A stretch of 64,000 nt of DNA, from contig NW_002060945.1 of the NCBI RefSeq assembly GCF_000150275.1, positions 2,627,172 through 2,691,171 of the forward strand. The letters are read 5' to 3'. Position 1 is the stretch's first letter; the number at the start of each line of letters is the position of its first letter. Positions 23,556 through 48,400 of this stretch are shown piece after piece. The position numbers were made by a program, and so were the translations under genes. The notes under the pieces were generated by a model. That model was given only the letters and a program-made list of their open reading frames with translations. It was not told where the DNA came from and ran no database searches. This DNA is from Trichoplax adhaerens (lineage: Eukaryota; Animalia; Placozoa).

Positions 23556-25771
23556 TTTAATAATTCGAAGTAAGCATTCATACTTTGGAATAAATAATAA
23601 TGCAGCAATTTAATATTATTTTTTCTGACGCATTAAATAAAGTTTTATCTTTGATACTTTTATAATTAATGATACAAATGAAAGATTGTAATGGCTCCGA
23701 AATACTTTGTAAGACTATGTGTTCTAACGAAAATACAAATGTACTGTATTAGTTTAGTCTTGATATCATTAATAGGACACAACTTGCTGATTGTGATTAT
23801 AAAACTTTCCGTGATTAAAATGCAATATCATACGAAAAAATTTGAACTGCTTCAAGAATAAATTTATTTTTGATTATAATTACTGCAAATATGAATTATA
23901 AACAAAACCTAGATAGTATAATTTAGTTTTGATCATCTTTCTATCGCATATGATGGCCAATGAGAGTCAAGAACTGAAGCTGTTTAATAGCATTGTACGA
24001 TAAATTTGCTCTTCCCCTACCTCTTGATGTAATCGAATGGAAACTGGAATGAAAAGTAGTATCAGTACGAGAAAATACTCAGATGTCCAAGTATTCTTCC
24101 AGATAACACAGCTACGCTATTTCTTAATTAATTATCAGCAAGATTACGATTTCTTGCAGTAGAATCTCAAAAATTTGAATCTTTAACAAACATTTAGCTT
24201 ACTCATTTCTAGAATATAATTAATTAGCCTTTTTAAGATGCGATAGAATAATCCCGCGACTACATCATTTTCAGAATTAAATCTATTTCATGCAATATTG
24301 CTAATTTAAAAAGTGTGAATGATCGGCTCTAGCAGTAATATATAATTCAATCGAAATGATAATTTATTTATAAATTATGGAAATACACAATAAATATTCG
24401 ATATAATTAGCAACAAGTTAGACAAATCCTGTTTCTGCCAAGTTAAATCGGCATTTATTACCATATTTTGAGGGCAATACTGCCCTTTCAAATATCACAT
24501 TGAGCTATCTTGATTTTAATTTCTGTAATAAAGTATTTTGCATTTATCTAATAGTATTTAGCCATTAATAACAAGCTCCATGTTATGATTTTGATCTTAG
24601 ATTATATTAGCATAAGAATACTATTATATAGTGCATAGTACAAAATAAAGAAATTTCTAAATTTAATCCTAAATTGAGATAATTATCTGTGATCCTTCAC
24701 AATAACAGTTGGAGTATCTATGATTCCCTTATCCAGAAACTAAGCTAGCATACAAGAGAATTATAACATTACGATCTCATAAGTGGAATGCTTTATTCAA
24801 AATTAATCCTACATTGCAATACAAATACTGCAGTATCTTCTAAGATAGAAGAATAAAAGATATTTCTCCAATTTATTAAACTAAGCTGATTCTAAACTTT
24901 TCAAGAGCATCCATTAGCAGCTCGATGCATTAGCTTCAATTTAATTCATCATTTTTTGAATTTAAATTCAAACCTGGAGTAACTAGAGTACCAAAATTTG
25001 TGTTAAACTAAAAATAGGATTTTATTAACCATGATTAAATTAAGCGCCGTTAAATAAGACCCTATTCTATTGACGGCGAGGGCAAATTTCGCTATCCAAA
25101 TATACATAATCTTAAATATTAGCCGAGTAGAGCATACTATTGAGATAAACACTTATTGTAGTTTCGGAAGATTGAGAGTTCGTCATAACAGCAAGTAATT
25201 ACACCAGATTAATAGAAGAAAATAGTAATATTTATAGTATGTGTTTGAAGAAACCGAATTTTGGCTACAATAATTAATAAACGACATGAAATACTGGAGT
25301 AGCTTAAGTAAAGTAGAAGACGTAAAGTGCACAAACTACAGCTCAGTTAAATACAACTAGCTAATGAAATTGATGCTTAAGAATTGTTATATTGTGGAAA
25401 GCACAACACGGGAGAATTAATTGTAAACGTGAAAGAATTTATTAGAAGAACTTACTTTTACGATAAGGTATTTCTACAATACAATCAAGCTAGAGCATAA
25501 ATAGAATTCCGCGAATAAATTTAATAAAGATAAATCACGAATACTTGGAATTACGCTACAATTTAGTGTAAGTTAGTTTTATTATTAATAGAATGTACCT
25601 GGTATACCATATGTGTTTACTATTAACTACTACCTCATAATGAATAATATATACTTTTCATTACTAAAAAACAATTTGTTATTCAAATATATATATAATA
25701 TAAAATAGAAATAAAATATACAGCATCCTAGCAATGTTAAAGCTTATTGCGATTTAACAATTCGCAATTTA

Positions 25772-28700
25772 TCAGGCTTCAGAATTGATGCAATTAAGAT
25801 GTTTCGCCAATGCTCGTTTTAGTTTATCTAAGTAATAAATATCTACTGATCTTGTTTTCGCTTTATATTCATGTAATGTTTCCATAATTTTAAATTCATC
25901 ATCCTCTGTTAGTAAATCACCTTCATTATTTCGCTTGTACGGAAATATATATCTTTTATCTTTGATTAATTCGTTATACTCGTGTATAACTTGTAATGCG
26001 GAGAATTCTTCAGCAAAAATATCCTTCTGAACCAAGACTTCATTCATTGTATTAAAATACTTTCGACATATAATATGAGCATCGAGACTCTTCATCAAGA
26101 AGTGATATTGTTTTTCTTGTTTATCGCCGTACCATATAGCAATACAATTTTGTTTCTTCGTTACATCGTATGCTAATCTTTCGTAATAACTATCTGATGT
26201 TATAACATCTCCAATATAATATAATTCTAATATAGATCGCGCCATTTTTCCATGTGCTGTAGGAAATTGATTAAATAACTCCGTTGCATCTGTACCCAAT
26301 ACGAATTTTAACATTTCGTCGCCTCCTGGATGAAGATCAATATATTCACCGATATCGTATACACGACGGTCTATAACAATCCAACAACCGTTACGTCCTC
26401 CATTATGAGTAACAATATCGTATATCGATATATTCATTTTACAATCGTTTGTTATAGGCTTATATACTTCGATTTTAATTCGATCAGTTGTTAACATTCT
26501 AATTAATTCTTTAATACCTATAGCCGATTTGAATATTCTAATCATATCTCTATACAAAGTTGTAGGACCGCATATATAGATCAATGCATCTTCTTTACAT
26601 AATTCGATTAATTTATTTTGACCTTCGCTCGATGAAAAGTAACTCGTAACTCGACCGTTGTAAATATACGAATATTGCGATCCTTTCCACTTTTGTATAT
26701 TATCAGCTGATAGACATAGCTTCGTATAATTTACTGTGTCTGGAGCATCTTCTATAGTTCTACAACCAAAGTATAACAACATACGACGATTTTCATTCAT
26801 CTTCTTATTACGATCGATAAACGATTGATATGGAGCTATACCCGAACCTATACCAATCATCACAATTGGTTTAGAACTATCTTGCGGAAGTCGGAAAGAA
26901 GAATTAATAGGGAATACATCAATTACTTGATGTTGATCGAATAGATTATCGATAGGCGCAAGTATCGGCGATACTTTACCGTTATCGATACGTTCGACAA
27001 GTAATTTAATATTATCGTTATCGAACGAGGCGATGTTATACGTACGTGGCAGTTGCGGAGGAACTATAGATGGAGAGCCATGAGGTTTATTATTTGTAAA
27101 ATCGGCGTATTTAATAAATATTTCTTTAGATACTTTTCCGTTAGATATTCCAAAATGATTATGTACGAATTTTATCCACTCTTTTTCAGTAGTATCTTTA
27201 GTATGAATATCTAATACAAAATATTGGGGCGCACTGTCATAATTTGTAATAGTATTCGGTATAAGTACACCAAGTTTATCACCCTCTTGATACGAAAATT
27301 TCTTATCGTAAATAGAAATGGTTACATATTGTAGAGTATTGCGCTGATTGAGATTAGCAGGAGTAGAATGAATCGTTGCACTAAATAATCGGTTAGTAAA
27401 TTGGCGATCATCGATTGATTCGTTAAATTCTGTATTAAGTTGTATATGAGCGCTCTTCGATTCTGTCTCTTGGTTAGTTACAGTAACAGTTCTATCTAGC
27501 TGAGTTACAAGAGATAAAACTCCTAATGCCTTGTTACGATGTATATCCAACATTCTATGATAAGAACGTTCAAATAAATCAAAAGTCTTATTTAATTGTG
27601 AATCGTTCAATGCTTTTATAAACTGTTTAGGACTTCCAGTTTTCTCAAATCCTAATTTAAACGCTGTTAAAAATTGCCTATAAGATTTAGGTATTAGCCT
27701 ATATCCATTACTGAACATTTTTCCAATGAGAGACTTACGTATTCGATCAATAATTATATCGAAAACAGCGAAAATGGGATCAAATAACCCGCTAGTAGAA
27801 TTTCCAATTAAGCTATTTTCTTCCGCTATAGCGAATAATTCTTCATCTTTAGCAGTGTACCAATCCAGGTTCGCTTCAGTTAAAAGATGAGATGTTTTCT
27901 CCTTTGATGGATCTAAAAGACAATTTGGAGCTATAGGTCCAGTTTGACCTATATGTCTCCAGTGTGAAGGAATAATACTTATTTCAGCATAAGAATTAAA
28001 TTTTGGCTCCGATAGTGTTTCGGATCCTCGGTTAGCTATTTCTATTAATTTGTTAAGATGGATTATAATTTCATCTTTATCGCCATTGTACATTGCAGAT
28101 TGAAGATCTAATGCTGCATCGACGATATCATAGCATGCGTATCTAAGAGATGCAAGTGAGTATCCATGAAATGAAATTTCTGTACATGAACCTAAATCTT
28201 CGACATTAAAGAATGGAAATCTCATTTTTAAATTATTAAATGAGAATCCTTCTTCGGGCCTTTTTAAATCAATATTATCTATATTTTGAGTATCATTTGT
28301 ATTTGAAGGAATTCGATCTAATATTCTACAACAATGTACCCAAGATTTTTGTAGATTATCCGGTAATTTAGGAATATCAAATCCATTAACCTTTCCATAG
28401 TAATTCCAATAAATTAAGGCTATATTAACAGCGGCTGAATGTAGAATAGTAATTATACTCTTAGGTAAACTTTCGATTTCGTCACCAATATTAGGTAACT
28501 GGCGTACCTTTTCTCGGAAACGCGGTGAATAACTATTGGGAAGGTTTTTTGCAAATAGAAACAACGCTCTACATTTATCAGGTAATTGATCAGGATGTGG
28601 ATCAGTAATTAATTTAGGCGGATAAAATCCATGATAATATACATGACCTTCTGGTCTTGTTTCGGGATTTTGATCCCACATTTCTAGTAATTCTCTGGCA

Positions 28701-29056
28701 GGACTTGTTCTTGGGCTATGTTGATCATCGTTGCTAGATAAAATAGATTGTAATCGATGTCTATTGATAAGTAACCGAGAATTAATTGAATGTTGTAATT
28801 CTTGAGTATAAGCTTGTGCTTGAGTTTGATTTTTTGCTGTGTAGAATTGTGATTTACCTACTCTTATTAATACTTGTTGAGTTGATAATGCCTTGATTTG
28901 TTGACCGCATAATTTAGTGATAGCAGAGTGTAATTGATTTCTATTCGAGTTTTGTGTAATGAGATAAATTTTGACTTTATTTCGATGTGAATCAAGGCTT
29001 TGTTGTACTGCTTTACTTCCAATAGCCTGAGCAATGGTTCCTAATGTCTGTTCCAT
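25772..29056 (-). CDS. Uninterrupted ~1094-aa fusion: IDO/PrnB-like heme oxygenase domain + FNR-type FAD/NAD(P)H reductase + cytochrome b5 heme-binding domain + C-terminal helical region
   Basis: ORF track 25772-29089 starts at TTG; the first ATG is at 29056 (MEQTLG). Numbering follows the ORF track. IDO-like motifs: HGFYPP (~153), LPDNLQKSW..CRILDRIP, SGLFDPIFAVFDIII, IPKSYRQFL, LDIH517RNKALG (candidate proximal His). FNR motifs: R682TYNIAS, GKVS, G746IGSGIAPY, FGCR, YICG. b5 motifs: WIVIDRRVYDI..H920PGG..GTDATELF..AH946..L.LYYIG. Candidate polyA signal at 25578-25583 (- strand). Confidence 0.85.
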   Translation of the reverse strand: MEQTLGTIAQAIGSKAVQQSLDSHRNKVKIYLITQNSNRNQLHSAITKLCGQQIKALSTQQVLIRVGKSQFYTAKNQTQAQAYTQELQHSINSRLLINRHRLQSILSSNDDQHSPRTSPARELLEMWDQNPETRPEGHVYYHGFYPPKLITDPHPDQLPDKCRALFLFAKNLPNSYSPRFREKVRQLPNIGDEIESLPKSIITILHSAAVNIALIYWNYYGKVNGFDIPKLPDNLQKSWVHCCRILDRIPSNTNDTQNIDNIDLKRPEEGFSFNNLKMRFPFFNVEDLGSCTEISFHGYSLASLRYACYDIVDAALDLQSAMYNGDKDEIIIHLNKLIEIANRGSETLSEPKFNSYAEISIIPSHWRHIGQTGPIAPNCLLDPSKEKTSHLLTEANLDWYTAKDEELFAIAEENSLIGNSTSGLFDPIFAVFDIIIDRIRKSLIGKMFSNGYRLIPKSYRQFLTAFKLGFEKTGSPKQFIKALNDSQLNKTFDLFERSYHRMLDIHRNKALGVLSLVTQLDRTVTVTNQETESKSAHIQLNTEFNESIDDRQFTNRLFSATIHSTPANLNQRNTLQYVTISIYDKKFSYQEGDKLGVLIPNTITNYDSAPQYFVLDIHTKDTTEKEWIKFVHNHFGISNGKVSKEIFIKYADFTNNKPHGSPSIVPPQLPRTYNIASFDNDNIKLLVERIDNGKVSPILAPIDNLFDQHQVIDVFPINSSFRLPQDSSKPIVMIGIGSGIAPYQSFIDRNKKMNENRRMLLYFGCRTIEDAPDTVNYTKLCLSADNIQKWKGSQYSYIYNGRVTSYFSSSEGQNKLIELCKEDALIYICGPTTLYRDMIRIFKSAIGIKELIRMLTTDRIKIEVYKPITNDCKMNISIYDIVTHNGGRNGCWIVIDRRVYDIGEYIDLHPGGDEMLKFVLGTDATELFNQFPTAHGKMARSILELYYIGDVITSDSYYERLAYDVTKKQNCIAIWYGDKQEKQYHFLMKSLDAHIICRKYFNTMNEVLVQKDIFAEEFSALQVIHEYNELIKDKRYIFPYKRNNEGDLLTEDDEFKIMETLHEYKAKTRSVDIYYLDKLKRALAKHLNCINSEA

Positions 29057-29854
29057 GATGGAAATTTCTTCCGCTTTGGCAGTCTCCAATGATGTTGATG
29101 AATACTTTGAATTAGTAGTTAAAAAGGTTTCAAGATTGATTTCTCTATCTACAGAATACTTTACGGTTTACAGTAAGTTTTGAAAATATCAATGATTCAT
29201 TATTCCAGTACGGTATATTTCAAAACTTTTGAATATATATATAATAATATTAGTTGACTATCTATCAAATGTGCTTCAAGTTACTTTATTCAAATTAGAC
29301 TATAGTATGTTCATTAAGCATGTTTATTTTGAAAGATTTAAATGTGTCAAGAGTTGTGAAATTTTCTTAGTATAGTGTAGCAAACCCTTGATGTCTGCTA
29401 GTAGTAAACGTATACAATCGCCATACGAAACAAAATTGTATGGTACAGCGGGAGTCGTACTTGCAAAAGCGAATAACCTACAACTCTTTCATCTACCACT
29501 GACTAATAGTTTGTATTCGAAATTTCAAAGAAATCAAGTTACTCAATACTGCAATAAAAACATCAACAGCCAATTGCTCAACGTTGTACTGATCTGTCTG
29601 CGTGTTATTGGAGCTCAATTTAAAGTTGATGGGATGAAACGGGGTACCCGGGGAACTAATTTGCCAAGAGTTGCAATTAGACCTGAGAAATACGGTGGCT
29701 CACAATGTGCATCCTGGCCTAGGATGGGACGGACGATCGTTTGACCGCCTGAAAAGTGGCGCAGGTGCAGTTACGAGCATCGCAGCAGAGTCACATGACA
29801 GCTGTGTCATGGTTATTCGTTAAGTAAGTAAAAATGGCCGACCCTCCCGACACT

Positions 29855-30065
29855 GGTTTAGAACTTCAAGTCTGATTAGGCAGCTACTGTACGAGTGCCG
29901 GACTGATCATTGGTTTACTATATCTATTCCTGAAAAATTCTTCCTAGTAGAAGCTTGAATGCTGTGCGAGTACTTGTGTAGTGCATCTCTTCTTCTACGA
30001 AGAGGTTTTCAGGAACAGTAAACGACTGATCAGTCCGCCACCAATCCGAGCTGAAGTTCTAAACC
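29855..30065. repeat. Long imperfect inverted repeat / foldback (~210 nt)
   Basis: Nested perfect arms: 29855-29868/30052-30065 (14 bp), 29899-29909/30027-30037 (11 bp), 29913-29919/30017-30023, 29927-29936/30006-30015 (10 bp), 29947-29953/29992-29998. Confidence 0.8.
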
Positions 30066-30227
30066 CAAAGCATGGAACTGCATGGTAGTGAAAGCAGTAC
30101 AGTGTACGGTTTGAAATGGACACACCAGTTAAAATGACCAGAGAAATAGTCAGCCTCCATATTTTCGGCTAAAGAAAATCGTGGATGGTCCTTCTGTCAT
30201 TCTTTCTGTAGCACACACACGTGACAG

Positions 30228-30482
30228 GACTGTACAGTGTACAGTGTACACTCAGTACAGTACAGGAATGCGAGTGTACGTGTACAGTACTACTGTACTG
30301 TACTATCCGGTACCATTTTTACAGTACTGTACACTGTACAGTACAAGGGACTACTGTGAAAGAGTACAGTACTATACAGTTTACACTGTACTGTACTGAA
30401 CACTACTGGAACTACTATACTGTACACTGTACAGTATAGCTATCGCTACATTTACTGACCTATCCCTAGTTAATACAGTATA
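30228..30482. repeat. Cluster of (ACAGT/ACTGT)-based palindromic simple repeats upstream of RPL10A
   Basis: Dense tacagtac/gtactgta/tgtacactgtacagt words across ~250 bp. Confidence 0.85.
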
Positions 30483-33477: not shown

Positions 33478-35732
33478 ATGTTTTCCATTCTAAGTATTAG
33501 TAGATTCGTAGCGCTACTATCTTGCACAAATTTACTATATGGCCTAATTCCTTTAGTCATCTTGCAGCAAGCTATAGGCGATGATTCTTGCTATGATAAA
33601 GAAACCTTAGGACGAAATTACAATGGCAACGTCAATTTTACCAAGACTGGAGCTAGATGTCAATCTTGGAGTCAAGTTTCCTACTACAACTTCGATCACA
33701 ACTATTGTCGAAATCCTGATCTCAAGGATGGAGGACCTTGGTGTTATTATAGCAATGCTATCAGCAGGTATAATAACAGTTGGGATTATTGCCCAATTCC
33801 TCCTTGTAAATGGAAAGGTTAGCGCTATTCCTCCACAAGGTTTTATTTCTTTACCGAAGTAGAACGCTGTGTTTATGTGGTATATAATGATTTGTTATAG
33901 GTTGCTAACGCAGTAAAATATGTAATGTCTTTTATAGATATTGATCGATGCAGTAATAGTAACGGCGGTTGCAGTCATATTTGTCTAACCACACAAAGTT
34001 CCTACTACTGCAGCTGCCCAAAGGGGTTAAGATTGGCTAGCGATGATAAGCAATGTGAAGACATCAATGAATGCGATTATGATGATGTTTGTGAATTTCT
34101 ATGCCTAAATACTTATGGATCTTATAAGTGCAGCTGTCCCAAAGGATACTCGATAAATGCTAACCAATGCCTTGATATAGATGAATGCAAATCTGATCGT
34201 AATATTTGCAGTCACAATTGTCATAATATACATGGATCATTTCTGTGTTATTGTCCTAGCAACTTAACACTCGGTAGCGACAAAAGAACTTGCATTAATC
34301 AGACTCAGATAGGTAAAATAAAATTGCTTATAATTTGATAGTTTTTATGAGCAGCTATTATCCTTGTTTTATGATTATTTATAATAGCATTTTAAAGCCT
34401 TATTTACCTATATTTCTAACAAATGAATTTCTCTTTTGATTAAATCAATACGTATTGCCTTATTTTTAAATTTAATAACTTCTAGCCAATTTTAAACCCA
34501 AGCTAAGAATTGAATGCAACCATGACTATATCAAGGTAGTAATTCCACGGTCATCATTGCCCGATATCGATAGACGAGACATCCAGCTTATAGATCCTTC
34601 ATGCTCTCCAACCCTCAACGGGACTCATTTCCTAATCACGATTCAGCCTTTACACAGCTGTGGCACAATAATTAAACATTATTCCAATTCTATCATTTAC
34701 AAGAATCGACTTCGAAATCGACCTGATCACCCATCTGGTCTCATCACTCGGAAAAAAATATTACGGTTAGCTTTCCTATGCTCCTATTCTAATCAAGGTT
34801 GGATAGGAATTGCTTATAATCCTGATAATAAGCCTCTAATATCCCATAATTGGCATAAAGGATATGGCAATTTTTCCTATTTTGCTAAAATTTATCCAAC
34901 AGCAAGATATTTTAATGCGTTCCCGCCTAGTGCGTATCCACTGCCATTGAAATTAAATCAACGAGCATATCTCGAATTTGGTGTACACGCTGGTGATGCG
35001 AATTTGCGAGTAGCTGTCGAGAATTGCTTAGCTACACCTGATACGAATATAAGCGATCCTATTCACTACTGGATTATCAGAAACGGGTAAAATTTTCACT
35101 ATACTCGTAAAGACTAAATACATTTGTAGTACCCTGTATTCAAGCGTACAATCTTAAATATAGTCTCACTGGATCTATTTAGGTGTAATGAAGATAAGAC
35201 TATTAAGAAGCATTATTCAAAAATCTCTAAAACTGTTCGGTTTAGCATCAAGGCATTTTCATTCTTATTTAATCAACCTTTCATATTCATACATTGCCAA
35301 CTTATGGTTTGTCCTCTGCATGATAACCTAAGTCGTTGTGCTCAAGGTTGTCAAAGAACAGTAACTTCCGGAAACCGTATTAGACGGGAACTTGGTCAAG
35401 ATGAAAAAGTTTTCTCTAGTATCGTTTCAGTTGGTCCATTGTTTAAACTTGGTAATTAATACTTACCTATAATATATGAGATAGTATTAGAATCAATGAC
35501 CAGGTAAAAACGATTGACGAATAATTTTGTTCATTCCGTAATAGATCACATTAAATATGAAAATTCTAACGGCTCTGAAAATAAGAACAACGTAGATATC
35601 CTGACAGTTTGGACAGTAGTACTTTTCCTGATTTTACTGTTTGTAATTATGTATAATATTTTTCTTTTCATTCGAAGAAATATCAATAAAAGAATTCTAG
35701 ATACAGGTTATGCGCTAATCAGAAATAGATAA
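33478..35732 (+). CDS. Kringle-EGF/cbEGFx3-ZP domain type I membrane protein (uromodulin/OIT3-like ZP family)
   Basis: Exons 33478-33817 (signal peptide + kringle CQSW..HNYCRNPD..GPWCY..WDYC), 33938-34312 (3 EGF), 34486-35086 + 35183-35451 (ZP-N/ZP-C; C..TP..WII.NGC..D..RFSI.AF.F..IHCQL.VC..CAQGC; furin site RIRR), 35545-35732 (TM VWTVVLFLILLFVIMYNIFLFI, short tail with YALI). Confidence 0.9.
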
Positions 35733-36495: not shown

Positions 36496-39400
36496 TTAGA
36501 AGCTGCGCGTAACGAATAGTGATATTAATGCAACATGCAATAAAGCAAAATAAATAACAACCCAGATTCTATTCGTTGGTAAGTGCCGCAATTGCCGTCG
36601 GATATTACTAAAGCGATTAAAGCAAAATTCGCAAAGTCAATTACAATTTTCTAGCATATTTAAAGGCTTAAAAAAATCAACATGTGCATAATATTAATGC
36701 AATAGTTACCGTTTCAATCGTGGCCAAGAGTTATATTTCATTTGTTTCGTAACTTTTTGCACTGACATTAAAAGCAAGAATTGCTTAGGACTAAAAATCT
36801 TAATTGCATGATCATAATCTACAAAAGAAAACCAAAACAAAAGCATACATAGGCTTGCTTCAGGTGAGTCAATGATTTCCATTTCATTGTCATCTTCTTC
36901 ATCCATGTTAATAAATACCTATAAAATTTCATAAAATTTCTGGTTTATTACCTCGTAAAATTGAATTATCAAATTTTGATATTGAGCGGTATAAATCAAC
37001 GCGGAAACATCGCATTTAAAACTTTGTTCCGAGAGCGCTCACCTCTCGATTCTCAAATGAAGGCGTAACATAAACAGCCAGCTCATCCTTAGTTTTCTGA
37101 AGTGATTCTTCAGCATTTATCCTTCTATCTTGTTCCATCTGTAAACGTTCCTAAAATAATTTGATAGATTAAAGAATATAGCACATACACCTTAATTAAT
37201 TTTTAGAATGGAGCTTATTACTTGTAGTTCATCCATCTTCCTTAGCAGATCATTCTGCATTTCTGTATACTGAAGCCTATGCAAGTATAGTGCAATTCAA
37301 AGGGAATCAGCGACTGAATCACAACAAGTTAAGCAAGGCATATGCCATGGTACGATAGAATGTTCTACCTTTCATTTACTATTGACGCATCTGGTAATAG
37401 TTTAACTTGACCATCAATTATATCTGTTAGAGAAAAAGTATAGAAATTTTAATAGACTATCGCATTAGGACATTTCTTGTTACTAAGTCACCTTACATGT
37501 GAAGAGGCTAGTCAAGTAACACTTAAAGAACGAACCTTTAGCAGCAGAGTTTCTTGGCTCTCCACTGTCTAACGGGCTCAAGGATCCTTCCTAACGTTTA
37601 CAGAAATTTCAAATAACAATCAGTTTGTAGGAAGCTAAAGTATAACAGTATATTAATATAGGAAAAACAAATATTATTTTAACTTACAACACTTTTTGAA
37701 GTTATAATAGCTTCATTAATCATAATAGAGTTATCAGGCTCGCTGCTTCCATTCAAGTTACCAAAAAGAGCATATTTAATTCATTAATAACAAAATTATG
37801 TTGAAAGTTTAATGAAGAACTCTACCTTAACTTCTGTTGACTTTTAGCACTTTCATAATTCTTTAATAACGATAGAGCCTAGATAAAGATTTAAATCGAA
37901 CTAGAATTAAAGATCTATATCTACAGCACCTAAAAATGGCAAATACTTACCTCAATCTCAGCTACTAATCCTTCAATTCTTTCATTTTGATAATCAACAA
38001 TTCCTTGCATACGATCGCATTCGTCAATTTTCTGCTTGCAAATCTCTTCAGCGTCAACTAGCTGCTTCTTGAGGTCTTCGTTTGATTGATTCAATGAAGC
38101 CAAATTACTACGATGTTGATCTTTACCAATTTCTTGGTTACTCTCAATATGAGCCATAACCGTATTAACCTGCTGCTGTAAGTGGTCTCGTTCTTCTAAT
38201 ACAAGTTGATAATCATTCTGCAATACATCATATCGATCTATATGTGAAACATTATTAGAGTTTTCCTGCTCTAGTAAGAACTTTAGAGATGAAATTTCCC
38301 TACGTAGTCCGGACTCAACAGCAGCTTTCTGATGTAGCTGTGTTATCATTTCTTCCCTTTCCATAACATTCTGACGGAGATTTTCGTTAAGCTCTTGAAA
38401 CTGATTATGCAAATTCTCTACTTCCTTTTGTAATAACTTGTTTTCTGACAAGTAATCATTAATTTTAACCATATATTCATCTCTTTCTAAAAGAATTCTT
38501 GATTTTTCATCAACATGAAAGGCATTTTCTTGTTGAACAGTTTCAAAAGAATTCTCTAATAGCGAATACTTAGATTGTTCGTCTTGTAATTGACTTAATA
38601 ATCTGGAATTCTCTTCCAAAATTCGTTCACAGCTGGCATTTAGTACCTCTAGATCGCACCTTTGCTGTACTAGCTCATCCGTGAGTGTTTTATTTTCTTT
38701 GTAATACTTATCATTGGAAACTCCTATTTTGCTAATCTCAGAATTCTTACCGTCAACCTCCGATTTTAATGTCTCCGATAAGTCTCGATAATTACTTATT
38801 TGATCCTCTAGATTATTAATTTTATTATCTTTTATAGAAAGCTCGTCGACTACACTATCATATCTGGCACTTAAGCTTCGATAGTTATTTTCTAACTTCT
38901 TCATTTTATCCTGGCATTCATTATAGCGATTATCAAGTTCCGTATATTGCAACTTAAAACGTTTTTCGGATTCATCAACATCCTTTTTTAGATTTTGGTA
39001 CGAATTCTTCGAGTCAGACATCTCCTTTTGGTATTTATCTCTATCTTTACGAATAGAATTCAATTCTTGTAGCAATTCGTTATTGGATTCAACAAGTACC
39101 TGAAGTTTAGGTAACAAACTTTTCTCATTTGCTGTAATTTCAGCTTTTGCTTCACTGATATGATCGTAACATTCATCATCCTTCTTTGTCAATTGGTTAC
39201 TATCCGAAGTTGTCTGAATTAATTCCCGTTCTAACATACAATCTTGCATAGCTGGATTGTGAATATCATTGGTGTACTCTGATTTCGACTTTCGTGACTC
39301 ATACCAGCTTTCTAGAACAGCTCTTGCTTCAGTAAGTGATGCGTCCGTCTCTTTAGTGGAAGAAAGTTGAGCGGCTAATCCTTCATTTTGGGACCGAAGG

Positions 39401-42400
39401 TGTTGAATTTCTTTTTTACATTCTTTTAAATCAGTTGATAATGCAATAAATTTTTGCTTAGCAGTATTCAGTCTTGAGGATAGTCGTTTATTCTCGTTAC
39501 CTAAGTAATTATTTTCCTCCTGTATTTCATTTAACTGACACAATTTAGCCCGCTTATCTTCAATCTCTACTGCTAATGATTCTTGATCCTTCAGTCCTTT
39601 TTCAACTTGTTGCTCATAAGAAATTAATTTGTCGGAGTAACTAGATGACTGATCTTGCAGTCTTTGCAAGTCGGTACGACATTCTTCCAACTCTAATAGA
39701 GTGTTATTGTGATTTTTACGCAGCGCTGCCATCTCGCTATCATACTTAGACCGTATTTCATCATAATCTTTTCCCAACATATGATACGTCATTGACAAAT
39801 TTTGAATGTCGTCTACCTTAGCACTTAGTTCCAATTTCAACTCTTCAATAACCAGATCTCTTCCATTAACTACTTCATTCAATTTAATGATTTCTTCTTT
39901 ATAATTTTCAACTTCATTACGATATTCCTCTAAATTGCTATCGTGTTTGGCTTTAAGTAATTGTATTTCGGACACAACGCTGTCATAATCTGTGTGTACA
40001 GCCTGTAATTCAGCATCCTTTAATTGCATTAATTTGGTCATATTGGCTTGTTCTTCTTTTATCTCACATATTATATCTTTTAAATTGGTATTCTCAGCAT
40101 TTCTCTCTACTAAATCATTAGCAATCGCATCTCGTTCTGTAGACGTTTTTTCTAATAAACTGTCTTTTTCTTTCATCATGCTATCAAATTGACCCTTTTC
40201 TATTTGGAACATTTCTATTTGTTTATCCTGAGTTTCGGTTAGATGAGCACGGCCATTTTCTAATTCATCTATCTTCATTTGTAAATTGCTATTCTTATTT
40301 TTAAATTCTTCAGCTTTAGCTTTATGTAGCTGCAATTCCTCCTTGAGAGAACTAAACATTTGCTTAGCTTTACGAAGTTTAATCGCTAACTGCTCCTTTT
40401 CGTTGGTTATTCCTTCTATTTTAGCTTCATATTCTTTACACTGAAGTAGTTTTTCTTGTAAGGCATCAATTTCTCTAGCTACTAACTCTTTTTGTTGATG
40501 CTGTACCTCTAATTCACTTTGCAAATTGCGAACATTGTCCTGTTGTTCATTACGCTCTCTAACAGTATCGTTTACTTGTTTCTGTAATCCAGATACCTCA
40601 TCCATTGAAGCTGACAACTGTGCTTCTAATTCTGTTACCTTATTTTGGAAACTTGATGACATATCATTAAACGAACATTCGAAATCAGCTTTTGAAAGTT
40701 CTAATCGAGATATAACGCTATCATAGTCTTTACGCAGAACTTCAAGTTCTGAAACTTTTGCATTTATTTCGTGGACCGTACTATTTTGTTTCTCTTCCAA
40801 TTTATGTATCATATTTGTCAAACTTTTATTCTCAAGCTCCTTTTCTTCCAAACTTTTCGCCACACTGCTTCGCTCCACTAGAGAGCTTTCTAATAATTCA
40901 TCTTTTTCTTTTATTACACTCTCAATTTGACCCTTTTCGTTTTCAAATTCTTCCAGTTGCTTTGCTTGAGTATCAATAACTTGAGTATATTTACTTTCCA
41001 AGACGTCTACTCTAGATTGTAGATCAATGTTTTCCTTCCTATATCCTTCAGTTTCAGATTTTTGATGTATTAACTCTTTCTTAAGATTACTGAGGACTTG
41101 CTTAGCCTTATTTAATTTATTGACTAACTGCTCATTTTCTTTGGTTAAATTATCAAACTTTTCTGTGTGATCTTTATATTCTAGCAATTTCTCCTGAAAT
41201 AAATCGTTTTCTTTGGCCAGCAATTCCTTTTCATTACGTTCTATTTCGATTCCTCTTTCTAAATTTAATATTTGCTCATGCAAGCATTTGCGACTTGCAA
41301 CAACATCATCTGCCTCCTGTCGTAATTTAGATATTTCGGATACTGAATCGTGTAACTGATTTTGCAATTCTGCTACCTGAATTTGCAAACTGGACGACAT
41401 ATTTTCCAATGAAGTTTCATGAGCACTTTTTGATAACTCAAACTGAGATAAAACATTTTTGTAATCGACACGTAGAGCTTCCAGTTCCGAATCTTTCACT
41501 TTTATTTGATTTGTCGTAGTCTTTTGCTCTTCTTCCAATCCTTGCAGCGTAGTTGTCAAACGAGCACTTTCTGTACATTTCTCAGCTAGATCGTTAGTAA
41601 TTCTATCACGTTCTAATATAGATTTTTCCAACAAGTCGTCCTTTTCCTTTAAAAGACAATCTAAACAGGCCTTTTCATTTTGAAACTCATCTGCTTGCTT
41701 ATTTTGAGTATCAATAAGACGTGCGCAATCTGATTCCAAGAAATCTATCCTAGATTGTAGACTAGTATTCTTGTCTTTAAATTCTTCCAACTCAGATTTC
41801 TTATGTTGCAACTCCTTCTTTAGGGAATTAAGCATTTGTTTGGCTTTACTTAATTTAATAACTAGTTGTTCATTTTCACTAGTCGTATGAGCTAATTTTG
41901 CTTCATAGTCTTTATACTCTAGTAATTTAATTTGAAAAATATCATTTTCCTTTGCTAACAATTCCTTTTCTTGACATTCAGCTTCTATCTCTTTGTGTAG
42001 AATACAATTTCGATCTTGTAGCTCGTCACGCTCTCTTACAGTATCATCTAGTTTCTGACGTAATGTAGATATTTCATCCACTGATTCCGATAGTTGGTTT
42101 TCTACTTTAGCTAGTTTATGTTGAAGGTCAGCAGATAAATTCTTTATCGAAGAATCATAATCAGCTTGTGACAATTCCAATGACTGCAAAGCGTGACGAT
42201 AGTTTGATTGTACAGTGTCAAGTTCAGAATCCTTATGCTCTAATCTCACTCTCATATCTTCCAATTCTTCTTCCATCTTTCTTAGCGAATGCTCTAGATT
42301 ACCATTCGCTATACGATTCTCTTCCAAAGTAGTATTAATATTGTCTCTTTCAGTCATAGATTTTTCGAGCAAATTATCTTTTTCTCTAATGATGCCATTA

Positions 42401-45400
42401 AGATGTTCTTTTTCATTTTCAAACTCTAGCATCCGATTACGTTTATCATCACTAATGCTAGCACATTCATCTTCTAGGCATTTAATCTTATGATTAAACT
42501 TTATATTTTCATCTTTGTATTCTTCGACTTCAGATTTCTGATGTTGTAGCTCTTTTTTAAGAGAGTTTATCAATTGTTTAGCTTTGTTAAATTTACTTAA
42601 TACTACTTCCTTCTCATTAGTTACTTCATTCAGTTTTATTTCGTACTCTTCTTGTTTCACTAATTTTTCTTGTAGAGAGTTTGTTTTTTCCACCAACAAC
42701 TTATTGTTGTCAAGTTGTGCTTTTAGCTTGTCCTCGAAATTACAAATATCTTCTTGTAATGCATCATGTCGCACACGAGTCTGTAGAAATTGTTCTTTAG
42801 TGTCAAGTAATTCATCTATAGTGGTGAAGAGCAGAACTTCCAACCGCATTACTCCAGACTCAAGTTTACCAGCTTGGTAAGTGTCCGCATGTGAATGTGT
42901 CTTTTCCTCTGTTATCTTTGAATCACTAGCATTTGCAGCTGGCAATACGTCCTCAGCAGCATCTAAATCTGCCGCAGTCTTTGCAACGGATAGAAATTGG
43001 TTGCCTTCCGTTACTGATTCATTGTCACTGGATTTGGACACAAAGTTTGCTATCTTAACCTTGTGATTATCGAGTTTAGAAAATATTACATCGATTTTTT
43101 CCTCAGCTATTGTAATAACTTTTTGAAATATCTCCAGTTGCTGCGTTTGTTCTGATAAATGTCCTTCCAAAACAGCGATCTTTTCATCTTTTAATATGAT
43201 ATCATCCTTGTATTTAGTTAATTTTTTATTTATAACTTTCAACGCATTATCAAGTACTTTTTTCTCTTCTATTATCTCACTCGTTTCAATGATTTGTTCT
43301 TTTATCTTATTGCTATCATTTTCAGCTGCTTCCAGTTGGTGGTTTAAGTAAATAATCTTGTCATCTTTTTCCTTCAACAAGTTAACATTTTCATTCAATA
43401 GTCTTTCTTTTTCTTCAAGTGCATCTTGAGCTCTCAGTAATTCTAAATTTCCAGCTTCATTCTCCTTTGCTAAAATATTACGTTCATTTCTTAACTTAGA
43501 TTTTAAGCCTTCAACTTCCGAAGTTTTCTCCTTCAATTCTACTTTCAAGCATGTGATAATATCATCAGCTTGTGAAATCGTTTTTATCTTTTCATCAGCT
43601 TCATGTCCTAATGTAATAACTTCATACGTCTTCGCGCTTAATTCTTTCTCTATATCCTTCAGTCGTTCCTTTAGACTTTCAATATGCTCTGTCGAATGGC
43701 GATCCCGCTCGTCTAATTCCTTGTTTACTTTACTTATTTTTACAAGTTCAGAAGATATCTTTTCAAAATCATCCCTGACACTTGGTAACTCGATATTAGC
43801 TTTCTGGTCTAGCTCAGCGAGTAAATCATTCTTTGAGCGTAATTCGACTGTTAGTAATTCTTGTTCCTTGATACTATTAAAAATGGAATTATTCCTTTCA
43901 GCTAATACTGACTCAAATTCAGCCCTTTTATCAATCAATTCTTGCTTCATGGAGGTGATCAATTCTTTCGCAGATTGAAGTTCTTCCAAAGCCTTTAATT
44001 CAGCTGTATTACTATTTTCTAACGCTTTTTTGATTTCAGAATGTTTCTGTCGTAAAGAACTTAATTCAGATTTAGTATCACTTAGTTGCTGCTGCGTTGT
44101 GACTAATAATGATTCTTTAATGGACAAAGTATCTGTTACTTCATATTGGTAACTTGAATAACGTAATTTAACGCTTTCAAGTTCTTTTAATTGAAGGGTG
44201 AGATCATCTTCTAATGCGAAAATTCTTTCATTACGCTTTTCTAGCTGTTGTTGTAACGATGCCACTTCCTCTTCCATATCATTCAGTTGTTCAAAAAGTG
44301 ATTGCATTCTTTCTGTTGACACTTTCTTTTCCATCATGTAGTTGTCTTTCAAAGAAAACAACTTATCATCAGCTTTCCTAAGGTTGATTTCTTTTTCGTC
44401 AACTGCAACACTCAGTTCATGGATAGAAATCTCATTTTTAGTTATTTCTGATTTTAACATTTCAATAGACTCTTCTTGAACTTTTACTTGGGTAGTTAAG
44501 CGTTCAATTTCAGTGTTTAAATTATTTCTTTCCGTTATAAGAACTTCAAGTTCAGATAGCTTGCCAGAATTATCTGAAGTTAGTAGAGCAATTTGGTCTG
44601 ATAACGATGAAATTTTATACTCTCTTTCCTTACATGTCTCAGCCATTCTCAACAACTCATTCTCTAACTTAGTTATTACTCCTTGTTTTTCATTTACTTC
44701 CACTGTTAGTACATTTAATTTCTGCAAGTTTTGCTCAAATTTTTCTTTTAAAGCACATAAACTTTGATTGGATGTATCTAATTCCAATCTTAACTCTTCT
44801 AACACTCCCGAGTTGCTATCATTGTCATGCTTTAAAGAGTCTATCTCACAATTAAGTTCTTGCTTTGATAATACCAACTTATTGATTTCATCCTCGCAAA
44901 CATTAATACGCTGTTTCCGCGCATTCAATTCGGTTAGTCTTTCCTCGGCCAGAGTTTTTAAATCGCGAACCAGTTTTGAATTTTCATCGTTTAAGTTGTC
45001 GGCGGATGCTAGACTACTTTGCAAAGTTGAGATGATGCTATCTTTCTCAGACACAATTAAAATTTTATCATTCAATTCATTTTCTAGAAGGTTGAATTTT
45101 TCTTTCATGGACGATAAATCAGATCTTACTACTGACTCTTGCTGATTAATTCTCTCATGTTCTCGTAGTAACTGATCAATACGCGACTTCTGTTCAACCT
45201 CTACTTCTCCTAATTTCTCTATTTTCCGTTCTAAAATAATTTTCTCTTGATAATTGCTATCTATGACATCATTTAATCTTTTTACTTCAGTACATTGCTT
45301 TTCGATATCATTTTTATATTCCTTTGATTTTTCTTCCAATTCACAGATATATTCATTTTTGTCTAAAAGCTCTCTTGATAATTCGGATAGTTCATGCTTA

Positions 45401-48400
45401 TAGTTATCAGCTTCTGTCTTAAATTTGTTTTGTTTTAGATTTATATCTTTCCTTACATTTGTCAATAAAGTATTAACATTTTCGTAATTAAGTCGGAGAC
45501 TCTCAGCATCTTGTTCAACATCGAAAATCTTCTGTCGCAACTGAGATATTGTCGTGTCTTTCAGATTCATCTCTTCCTTGAATTTATTCCTTTCCGCAAC
45601 AATTTCATCTTTCGTCTTGATAATTGATTCTATCTTGCTGCTACTATCTTCACTAAGAGAATCAATCTGTACTTGAAATGCCTTAATTTCTAAATTTTTG
45701 TCTTCGATCTCTTGACTTAATTCGTTTATTTCAGCATTTTTCTGTTTTAAGGAGCCCTGCAATCGTTGAATTATGCTGTCTTTATCCACACTTGCAGCTT
45801 CAAGCGCTTCTAATTTAATTGTAATTTCCTTTAGTTGAACTTGCAATTCTTCACCTTTTTCAACAGATGATTTTAGTTCATGCTTTAACTGTTTCACCGA
45901 GTCTTCCTTTGTTTTCATTACATCAGCAAGTATGTCGTTTTTTTCGCTCAAATTTTTTTCCAATGAAGCAATTATAACACTTTTTTCGTCCAACGATTTA
46001 TCCATTTTAGTTTGCAATTCATTGAGTTGGCACTTTAATAAGCCAGATTCGGCGAAAGATTCTTCAATAGAACACTGCAATTTCTCGCAATCGCCTTCCT
46101 TTACTTGAAGGGCTTCTGTTATCTGAACCACTAAGCTATCTTTCGATTCTAATAATTGATGTAAATTCGAAATTTCACTTTCTTTTTCCTCATTCTGATC
46201 GCATAAATCTAATACAGCCTGTTCTTTTTCAGCAATTTTCTGCTGGTAATCTTGAATAGCTAACTCACTTTCAGCAAGGGCAGTATTTCCACTTTGTAAC
46301 TGATCATTAATTGAATTGACTGTTAGAGTTAATTCTTCGATTACGTTATCCTTTTGTATTAATTTCTCTTCGCACTCTTGCAATCTTTGCTCAAGTTGAT
46401 AACGACGATCTTTGGAGCTCTCTATATCTAACCGTGACGATGCTAACTGACTGTCGAGATTATTCTTTGCTTCGTAAAGAGAATTTATTTCCTCCTTTAA
46501 CTTATCTCTTTCGTTTGATAAAGCCCTCAAACTTTCCTCTAAATTACGATTTTTTTCCTCCAACATACTAATCTTATCTGTTAAGAGATGATTACAAGAT
46601 TCTGCACCGGCTATACTTTGCTTATAGCTGGAGATAGCGCTAGATAATTCCTTAATTGTTGCAAGTCCTTGATTTCGTTCGTCAATAAGTGATCTTACTT
46701 TTATATTCCAATCATCCAGCTTTCGAGAGTCTAGATCTTTTTCATATTCTAATTCGGAAACTTTTTCCTTTAATTTAGACATCTCTTCTTGATAACCCAA
46801 TAATCTCTCATCAAGAAGTGTTAAACTACTTTTAGCCTTCTGAAATTGACTTTCTAAAGATGTCTTATTTGATTCAATATTTTGTAGTTTACTATCTCGT
46901 TCAATCAGTAGCATTTTTGTTTCTTCATAATTATTCTTAATATTATCCATCTCCGCCGCAATCGCTATATTTTTCTTTTTATATGCTTCGTTTTCAGCTG
47001 ATAATTTATCTAGCGCTTCGTCAGTTGACACTATCTTAGCTTTTGCGTCTTGTAGACTATTTTGTGAAGTTTCTATATTCCCCTTTAAATCATCGCGTTC
47101 AGCACAAAGTTCATTGTACTTTTGTTGCAGGATCATTTTATCGTCATAATTTTTTGAAAGATCGCCCTGAATATTATCTAATCGAGAACGATTATCTCGA
47201 TACTCTGTATCAAGTGAGTGATAAGAGCGCTCAAGATTTTCATATTTATTTTCTAATAATGATAAATTAGAATTTACTCTCCTGCGTTCTTCTTGTTCTT
47301 GCAATAAAATGTCTTGGTGTTGCTGGAGTTGTTGCTTAAGATTTTGATTACCTTCAACTAAGGCGTTATTTTCCCTAACAAAATACTCGTATTCATCTTT
47401 AAGTCGTTCATTTTCATCAATGGCATTATCCCTCTGCTCTTGCATCAACATTAAGGAATTATTCCACTCGTTTATATCGGATGCAGTTATTTGTTCATTT
47501 GGATTTGTAGAGAATTCATTTTGCAAACTTTCAATTTCCTCTCTTAATTGAGTAACTTGTGATCTAAGAAACAAATTTTCTTCTAGAGCAGCACTTCTTT
47601 CTTCAGTAACTTCATCCAGTTGACCAGTAATTTCAACAATTTTACTGCTAAATTCACGAATTATGGCATCTGCTGTAGCATCAAAATAAAGTGAATCTTC
47701 ACGTGATTTTGTTTTTAAATTCATATCATCATCTTCTTCTTTCGTACTATCACCACGATCTTTAGATATTAAAGTATCATGAAGTTTAGATAATTCTGTA
47801 ACTAATCGCTTTCGTTCATCTTCGCTATTTACTAAATTATCAGTAATTTCGTGATTGGCCAATTCTAAATCAGCTATTTTCTGTTTCAATCCTTCAAATT
47901 CCGAATTAATGTCGTTTTCATCGTTCGCTGATTTTGCTAAACTACTAGTAACCTTTTCATTTTCAGACTGTAAATCTTTAATTTTATTTTGTAGCTCTTC
48001 GTTCTATAAATATTGAGAATGTATTAGCTAAAATTTTTCCAACGTCATTTTATGGTATTAATATTATTATAACTTACTTTTGATTTCGCTTGTGCTCGGA
48101 GCTTGATAAACTTCGCATTACCCCTTTTAACTTCTAATTCTAATTCTGCAATTTTTTCTTTAAACGTTAATATGTCAGCATTATCTTTCGTACCGTCGTT
48201 AATATTTTCAGGCTGATCTATAATAAATATATGATCCATAGATTTATTAGCTTGAAAGGTATGCTTCCAGCTTGATACTACTATACGGAAAGTATTTTCT
48301 ATACCATTATTTTTTGAATTGGAGGTCGAATTATCCGCTTCCATCTTACTCATCTTCATATCATTTAGTTCTTTCTGTAGCATTTCAATGATTTTATCTT

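Follow-up and report, generated by a model that had tools for sequence, protein, structure and literature searches.

A single minus-strand gene in a 64-kb stretch of Trichoplax adhaerens DNA (64,000 nucleotides of contig NW_002060945.1, positions 2,627,172 to 2,691,171, here called the window) is predicted to encode a four-part flavocytochrome, in which a heme oxygenase domain of the IDO fold is followed by a reductase module for NAD(P)H and flavin adenine dinucleotide (FAD), a cytochrome b5 domain, and a conserved C-terminal tail. We consider it a real single-exon gene that was probably acquired from bacteria and whose product would pass electrons from NAD(P)H via FAD and b5 to the IDO-type heme, and we assign this reading as a whole a probability of about 0.6. 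The first-pass annotation, made from the sequence letters, had proposed a self-sufficient oxygenase of this kind, with an IDO/PrnB-like domain fused to its own reductase and b5. At the level that computation can reach, this interpretation is supported. Positions are given as window coordinates, and residues are numbered from Met1 of the window protein; the coordinates of the features are collected in Table 1.

The open reading frame (ORF) scan of the window found the gene as one uninterrupted minus-strand frame that covers 25772..29089 and has 1105 codons when counted from an in-frame TTG, which confirmed the earlier claim of one continuous ORF. The first-pass residue numbers were counted from this TTG at 29089 and are higher by 11 than those counted from Met1; its His517, H920, and H946 are H506, H909, and H935 here. 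An open frame of 1100 codons in DNA with 33% GC is far longer than chance would be expected to produce. The window is otherwise poor in ORFs (30-35% GC), with one other ORF above 310 amino acids (aa), which has 3319 aa. The motifs that had been quoted for the IDO family, the ferredoxin-reductase-type (FNR) module, and b5 were all found in the claimed order: HGF (142), DPIFAVFD (426), IPKSYRQFL (455), and DIHRN (504), then RTYNIAS (671), GKVS (693), GIGSGIAPY (735), FGCR (763), YICG (827), HPGG (909), and TAHG (933).

The assignment of the N-terminal half starts from its relatives. A phmmer search with aa 100-580 against 1.84 billion representatives returned two proteins (1.6e-8 and 3.8e-8), both bearing PF01231. 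P0002 carries PF01231 (7e-31) and Cyt-b5, and P0003 carries PF01231 (1.5e-23), FAD_binding_1, NAD_binding_1, and Cyt-b5. BLASTP aligned both halves of the animal protein to P0003, the N half with aa 136-551 against 21-393 (E 2e-16) and the C half with aa 664-1086 against 545-1018 (E 2e-33). Relatives with the same architecture match PF01231 at 1e-23 to 1e-35, and a profile built from seven N-domains reached human IDO1 at ~2e-38 and IDO2 at 8e-33. When a word-indexed protein collection was queried with the N-domain, it returned just the window protein itself, and the search with family alignment A2 gave no match.

The fold was predicted with AlphaFold2 from a 15-sequence alignment, and a single-sequence model with a predicted local distance difference test score (pLDDT) of 37 was set aside. 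For the IDO-like domain, the model has a pLDDT of 74 and a predicted template-modeling score of 0.77. The top matches of Foldseek against the PDB were all human IDO1 chains (probability 1.00, E ~1e-8, template-modeling (TM) score by target ~0.75, ~400 columns). VIA, which is independent of Foldseek, gave IDO2 with Z 32.0 and IDO1 with Z 31.1 (338 residues, root-mean-square deviation (rmsd) 2.7), followed by weaker matches to Shewanella SO4414 (Z 21), PrnB (Z 20), tryptophan 2,3-dioxygenase (TDO, Z 10.5), MarE (Z 8.5), and SfmD (Z 6.4). The shape search of the ESM Atlas led to an IDO2 cluster (TM 0.71/0.77), and the language-model feature search agrees; the Atlas also holds sizeable bacterial clusters that pair IDO with Cyt-b5 or with FAD_binding_1. 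According to the model, the N-terminal half is a full two-domain IDO fold, nearer IDO1/2 than PrnB. Thus, the check by AlphaFold and Foldseek that had been suggested came out for the IDO fold with IDO1 on top, and of the label "IDO/PrnB-like" the first part is borne out by profile, Foldseek, and VIA, whereas the second is not (Z 20 vs 31-32). A lineage-specific insertion of ~37 aa (aa ~385-421) lies immediately before the S422-G423 loop of the domain.

H506 is the candidate for the proximal heme ligand. It is invariant across the 15 aligned family members, and so are K509, G512, and 21 further columns. In the model, it lies in a long predicted helix within the range of the structural alignment (model 10-409 vs IDO1 12-374). 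The 22-residue spacing from the GD..L...[YF]D motif to the histidine is presumably the same in IDO1. These points are strongly suggestive of an equivalence of H506 with IDO1 His346, which is not proven residue by residue. The late-helix histidine pointed out before is retained as an invariant residue of a long helix, but its role as heme ligand is that of a candidate. By eye, from the profile alignment and alignment A5, the counterparts of IDO1 S263-A264, D274, and F163 are kept as S422-G423, D433, and F296, and the heme-holding core looks intact.

For the flavin module, sequence comparison places the protein in the ferredoxin-reductase superfamily, nearest the CPR/CysJ type. NAD_binding_1 (PF00175) matches aa 733-837 at 2.6e-7 (31.7 bits vs a cut-off of 22), and partial NCBIfam matches at aa ~668-845 are to the reductase parts of CysJ, flavohemoprotein, BenC, and similar proteins. 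The putative FAD region keeps the R-x-Y-x-x-S and G-x-x-S motifs and can be aligned to the PF00667 domain of P0003. The proposed FNR-type reductase is supported. The FAD subdomain is shorter than in the bacterial relatives, and much of the helical connecting subdomain is absent. In the ferredoxin-reductase superfamily, a terminal aromatic residue stacks on the flavin, and the NAD(P)H domain of the animal protein ends with an aromatic residue at this place. No domain of the flavodoxin or flavin mononucleotide (FMN) type was found in the Pfam and NCBIfam scans of the window protein, in agreement with the first-pass annotation; hence, the protein is not a diflavin reductase.

The cytochrome b5 domain with two axial histidines was likewise found as described, with a PF00173 match and both H909 and H935 present, and the latter is displaced by ~2 residues relative to the bacterial homologues. 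Behind b5, the conserved C-terminal tail is, judged by its alignment, a fourth part of the protein, which was absent from the earlier account. A short FPY..R...G motif occurs both in it and in the Coxiellaceae relatives; neither Pfam nor the ESM Atlas feature search gave a lead to its fold. A predicted complex in which the IDO-like and b5 domains were combined with two hemes, without family alignments, scored 0.01, which speaks neither for nor against docking.

By its domain order (IDO, FAD/NAD, b5, tail), the animal protein is a member of a rare, mainly bacterial fusion family and not an animal invention. Proteins of 1026-1314 aa with the same order occur in a Coxiellaceae metagenome-assembled genome (MAG; P0004), in several Chloroflexota MAGs (Anaerolineae/Aggregatilineales), in a Polyangiaceae MAG, and in the charophyte alga Klebsormidium nitens. 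P0003 is encoded on a bacterial contig, where its gene adjoins pnp, rpsO, and a CBU_0592-family gene. Within the order Coxiellales, 10 of the 86 genomes have an IDO-like gene, and half of these (5/10) are long fused ORFs in at least three divergent subgroups. The MAG with P0004 also encodes a separate stand-alone IDO-like ORF of 384 aa (G001:C78:5290-5754), and other genomes of the order have stand-alone IDO-like ORFs of 375-420 aa (L030-L033), which were used as outgroup. The loci were collected by a search with a 3-sequence alignment, and L023-L025, whose matches have frameshifts or masked letters, entered neither alignments nor trees. In our literature searches, no papers on IDO-reductase or IDO-b5 fusions, or on IDO in Trichoplax, were found. 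As far as this literature goes, no enzyme of this design is characterized, and the family is uncharacterized. The first-pass statement that no characterized animal enzyme of this architecture is known stands insofar as none was found in these searches, but the architecture is not unique to the animal, as bacteria and an alga have it, too.

The bacterial gene neighborhoods give hints to the function. In Chloroflexota (L011:3969-9026; L016:4257-9441; L019:3832-9423; L021:3542-9103), the fusion is the last gene of a tight conserved set, which consists of an HpcH/HpaI aldolase, a 150-aa RidA/YjgF-type protein (missing from the L016 and L011 sets), a ~275-aa protein with a C-terminal CBS pair, and the fusion; this set may point to the pathway of the family. 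In the Polyangiaceae-type clade, an M20-family peptidase/amidohydrolase is located just downstream of the fusion (L018:4564-5985 and L022:9807-11210, minus strand). P0002 is a shorter IDO and Cyt-b5 protein of 753 aa without a flavin module. Its locus (L003:181-13318) looks like a secondary-metabolite cluster. Its neighbors there are a 1882-aa AMP-binding/thioesterase/NB-ARC/TPR protein, which resembles an NRPS in its adenylation and thioesterase parts, as well as an O-methyltransferase, a GST, an ATP-grasp enzyme, and a regulator of the PAS-LuxR type. No kynurenine-pathway genes were present in the bacterial neighborhoods of family genes that we examined. Such surroundings give a hint of catabolic or secondary metabolism, not of the kynurenine pathway.

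Judged by the assembled contigs, the ORF appears to be transcribed in one piece. A 4572-nt contig of run X4 is collinear with 25034-29605 and has nothing on either side. The pieces from the RNA-labelled runs X11 and X12 are confined to 25253-29732, with none in 24500-25250 or 29733-30212. The 5' leader (window 29057-29732) is ~0.55-0.68 kb long, at least 550 nt, and holds seven upstream ATGs whose upstream ORFs have 3-11 codons. The 3' untranslated region has ~0.74 kb, and an AATAAA hexamer is found at 25026-25021. Altogether, 19 public runs from eight studies contain the stretch or part of it, and a 7955-nt contig from another run spans the gene and both flanks. A splitting of the ORF by transcripts, which had been named as a possible refutation, is unsupported because no splice junctions inside the ORF occur among the contigs examined.

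Two variants among the contigs deserve mention. Contigs of "organism B" from RNA-labelled runs and one X4 contig show 8 differences from the window in the coding sequence (CDS), all within 26031-28746; 3 are synonymous, 5 are replacing (S104F, D263V, D326N, M874I, V1009A), and 0 are stops. This suggests that the ORF has stayed open in a closely related strain or species. At 28395-28539, each of the four runs compared has a short contig (in X4, its length is 611 nt) that agrees with the window over just 23 nt to the left and 23 nt to the right of 97 nt, for which it has an equally long diverged sequence, and the contig ends are loose and unrelated. We rejected this contig as a splice; it is possibly a diverged copy or a fragment from elsewhere in the genome.

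The gene has a paralogue on another scaffold (G000:C1414:356161-359325; L005:1681-4671, + strand), which is an intact intronless ORF of 996 aa with 62% identity to the window protein and the same Pfam matches. Its start corresponds to aa ~97 of the window protein. Upstream of it, an in-frame region is faintly similar to the N-terminal extension of the window copy and is interrupted by stop codons; hence, the extension is either decaying there or not essential. The ratio of nonsynonymous to synonymous substitutions (dN/dS) between the two copies is 0.25 overall at a dS of ~1, with 0.24 for the IDO-like domain, 0.19 for the reductase, 0.26 for b5, and 0.29 for the tail. From these estimates, all four segments are under purifying selection.

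For the origin of the animal gene, we made three quick trees: full length with a mixture model, full length with LG+G4 and extra Coxiellales, and the N-domain rooted on stand-alone IDO-like proteins. L015, L019, and L020, which are near-duplicates of other Chloroflexota rows, were dropped from trees 2-3 and the N-terminally truncated L039 from tree 3. In all three, the placozoan pair is sister to the Coxiellaceae proteins P0003/P0004 inside the fused family (SH-aLRT 98-99). A Coxiellaceae-like bacterium is the probable donor of the gene, which would then have undergone duplication in the lineage of placozoans and full amelioration. A bacterial transfer is the most economical explanation, given that the pair is nested in this way, apparently has no introns, and is without homologues in other animals.

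By analogy with known systems, NAD(P)H would reduce FAD, and FAD would reduce the b5 heme by single electrons, as in b5 reductase/b5 and nitrate reductase. The b5 heme would then reduce the IDO-type heme from ferric to ferrous, and the ferrous heme would take up O2 and use it to oxygenate an aromatic substrate, probably one of indole type, with no need for an external reductant. A passage in PMC4191572, which cites Vottero 2006 and Maghzal 2008, names cytochrome b5 as a physiological reductant of IDO. We infer from the domain composition that the electron path runs from NAD(P)H to FAD, b5, and the IDO heme.

Several observations weigh against the proposed reading. PF01231 gave no match at E<=1 in the window protein or the paralogue, and the six-frame genome search with it also missed the gene; thus, of the HMMER/Pfam check that had been suggested, NAD_binding_1 and Cyt-b5 were found, but the direct PF01231 match was not. 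A PDB sequence search with aa 100-580 gave only 14-3-3 noise (E 1.4). The homology to IDO is transitive and structural. The HMMER/Pfam alignments of family members to IDO end just before the helix of the proximal histidine, and the equation of H506 with IDO1 His346 relies on its invariance, its place in the structural alignment range, and a presumably matching gapless spacing in IDO1. The Pfam FAD-binding model has no match in the animal protein. In b5, the second histidine follows 26 residues past HPGG, and the usual spacing is ~24 residues. The RNA evidence consists of assembled contigs, which can miss rare isoforms and give neither strand, transcript ends, nor expression level. In the trees, the placozoan stem branch has 2-4.6 substitutions per site, and the amino-acid composition deviates; hence, the exact sister group is uncertain, and a long-branch or compositional artefact is possible.

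The substrate pocket belongs to the same side of the balance. By eye, the counterparts of the IDO1 residues that bind L-Trp (Y126, C129, V130, F226, F227, R231) are unconserved. The carboxylate-binding R231 stands opposite a near-conserved Pro of the family, and polar or variable residues occupy the other Trp-site positions. On this comparison, the predicted substrate site is unlike that of a tryptophan dioxygenase. The substrate is probably other than free L-Trp bound as in IDO1. In the same genome, exon-sized matches to TDO (PF03301) were observed at G000:C1410:829052-840619 and 538590-538676, which suggests one or more canonical intron-bearing TDO genes, and the six-frame PF01231 search of the host genome found no canonical IDO. 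With a canonical TDO already available to the host, a different role is probable for the fusion protein.

Among the alternatives, a true NAD(P)H-consuming monooxygenase or hydroxylase, which would draw two electrons per turnover via b5 with the logic of P450 BM3, holds up best, and we regard it as unlikely rather than implausible. The sequence is compatible both with a dioxygenase that has a built-in reactivation and with a monooxygenase that uses NAD(P)H in each turnover, and cannot tell the two apart. A complete reductase chain, permanently fused and kept across phyla, exceeds the strict need of a dioxygenase, and the replaced L-Trp-binding residues fit a different chemistry as well. The superfamily of heme-dependent aromatic oxygenases includes non-dioxygenase chemistries (MarE, SfmD, PrnB), and these three appear as weaker structural matches. 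However, the closest folds are those of IDO1/IDO2, which are bona fide dioxygenases (Z 31-32), no chemistry can be read from the sequence, and IDO1 autoxidizes readily, so that a dedicated reductant would be useful even to a dioxygenase. That the animal uses a bacterially derived self-sufficient IDO-family flavocytochrome, which works with NAD(P)H alone on a substrate other than L-Trp and possibly by monooxygenation, is a tentative view that we hold to be somewhat less probable than its opposite.

A function similar to flavohemoglobin appears improbable. The protein would then be a nitric oxide (NO) dioxygenase or another detoxifying or redox-sensing flavocytochrome, or b5/FNR would reduce an external acceptor with the N-domain in a regulatory role. 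The domain logic is similar, and aa 670-844 have a partial NCBIfam match to the reductase part of NO-inducible flavohemoprotein (3e-7); the replaced IDO1 pocket residues and the lack of kynurenine-pathway genes in the examined bacterial neighborhoods are also in line with this idea. Yet the IDO heme pocket still has its S-G loop, Asp, Phe, and proximal-side His, and the N-domain is under purifying selection. In addition, the Chloroflexota operon with the HpcH/HpaI aldolase and the RidA-type protein looks catabolic, unlike a stress defence.

With regard to the origin, the gene could be ancestral to eukaryotes or animals with near-universal loss elsewhere, or Coxiellaceae could have taken it from a eukaryotic host. 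Klebsormidium, a eukaryotic alga, carries the fusion, eukaryote-like genes are known to accumulate in Legionellales and Coxiellales, and the placozoan branch is long and its placement uncertain. Nevertheless, we judge this very improbable. The rooted tree nests the placozoan pair in a family with 13 other members, of which 12 are bacterial and one is algal. The algal protein groups elsewhere: a clade of alga and placozoan, forced as a group named after seeing the tree, was 62 log-likelihood units worse (approximately unbiased (AU) test, p 2.5e-6). The contigs are intron-free, while the neighboring genes are split into exons, and the only matches to the animal domain among the 1.84 billion representatives were bacterial.

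That the stretch is contaminating bacterial DNA, an artefact of assembly, or a dead pseudogene, to which the bacterial nearest relatives and the lack of introns might point, has a negligible chance and was rejected. The gene is embedded among animal genes in a 9.66-Mb scaffold, has a GC content equal to its flanks, shows just ~24% identity to any bacterial protein, has a second copy on another scaffold with dN/dS 0.25, and is contained in independent runs from several studies with one contig bridging both flanks.

The predicted flavocytochrome can be compared with several known systems. Human IDO1/IDO2 are alike in the two-domain all-helical fold (~340 residues aligned, rmsd 2.7) and apparently in a histidine in the matching helix. 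They are stand-alone proteins that are reduced in trans, whereas the animal domain, which is ~15-17% identical to them and has a ~37-aa insertion, is fused to reductase and b5. PrnB and Shewanella SO4414-type IDO-like proteins have the same superfamily fold (Z 20-21), clearly weaker in similarity than IDO1/2. The bacterial family (CAYVBZ010000012.1 from the Coxiellaceae MAG, DAOUCB010000067.1 from Anaerolineae, and others) and Klebsormidium nitens KFL_002940010 have the same domain order including the tail. They differ from the animal protein by an identity of ~24%, its shortened FAD subdomain, its insertion, and the 114-aa extension of the window copy only, and the Klebsormidium protein has an EF-hand insert.

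P450 BM3 (CYP102A1) and other self-sufficient P450s also combine a heme oxygenase with its NAD(P)H electron supply in one chain and use a CPR/CysJ-type FAD/NADPH module. Unlike them, the fusion protein has neither a P450 nor an FMN domain, and the b5 heme would take the place of FMN as the one-electron shuttle; it shares the design principle, not membership. Direct transfer from NAD(P)H via FAD to b5 or to heme is found in b5 reductase/b5, NCB5OR, assimilatory nitrate reductase, and flavohemoglobin. In contrast to these b5-reductase systems, the flavin module of the fusion is of the CysJ/CPR type according to NCBIfam, and the final acceptor would be an IDO-fold heme in the same chain.

It has long been asked how cells maintain IDO-type hemes in the ferrous state, and in vitro assays use artificial methylene blue and ascorbate. 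An IDO fold, b5, and a flavin reductase kept fused across bacterial phyla, an alga, and an animal are independent genetic support for the b5 pathway. If the reading is true, the protein would be the first natural "BM3-like" heme-dependent aromatic oxygenase and Rosetta-stone evidence for b5 as the cognate reductant of the IDO heme. It would offer a tractable single-chain system for electron transfer from b5 to IDO and possibly a cofactor-cheap biocatalyst for the oxidation of indoles and aromatics. For animal genomics, it is a clean candidate for an expressed, duplicated, and selectively maintained gene from intracellular-type (Coxiellaceae-like) bacteria.

Table 1 Predicted features of the fusion gene and neighboring ORFs in window coordinates
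Feature	Position	Strand	Remarks
Complete CDS	25772..29056	minus	First ATG 29056; 1094 aa + stop; single exon; 4572-nt X4 contig collinear
Transcribed unit, approximate	25034..29732	minus	Contigs of X4, X11, X12
N-terminal extension, aa 1-114	28715..29056	minus	Q/N/S-rich; absent from all relatives
IDO-fold heme oxygenase domain (predicted), aa 115-555	27392..28714	minus	Transitive homology and AlphaFold2 model
His506 codon, candidate proximal heme ligand	27539..27541	minus	Invariant in 15 family members
FAD-binding part (predicted), CPR/CysJ-type ferredoxin-reductase module, aa 560-725	26882..27379	minus	RTYNIAS, GKVS; aligns to PF00667 region of P0003
NAD(P)H-binding domain (predicted), aa 733-866	26459..26860	minus	PF00175; GIGSGIAPY, FGCR, YICG; terminal aromatic (..IEVY)
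Cytochrome b5 domain (predicted), aa 883-951	26204..26410	minus	PF00173 1e-17; 64 bits vs cut-off 23.7
Candidate axial His H909 (HPGG), codon	26330-26332	minus	Invariant in 14 family b5 domains
Candidate axial His H935, codon	26252-26254	minus	In both paralogues
Conserved C-terminal tail, aa 952-1094 (~140 aa)	25775..26203	minus	BLASTP collinear to aa 1086; alignment A1
Ribosomal_L1 ORF, 187 aa	31895-32458		Pfam 7.5e-43
ZP-N/ZP-C ORF	34557-35090		
3319-aa uninterrupted ORF	37930-47889	minus	Region of strong GC and AT skew

The gene sits in the middle of its scaffold, and its GC content of 32.7% compares with 33.3% in the flanks. The neighbors are intron-bearing animal genes; their exon-sized ORFs encode LamG, EGF, and Ig domains as well as ribosomal L1 and ZP domains. 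Just upstream of the leader of the gene, window 30230-30400 is a highly repeated element with a depth of >2000 in run X1, and dozens of contigs join or diverge at 30250 and at 30320-30326. This repeat is likely dispersed or tandem.

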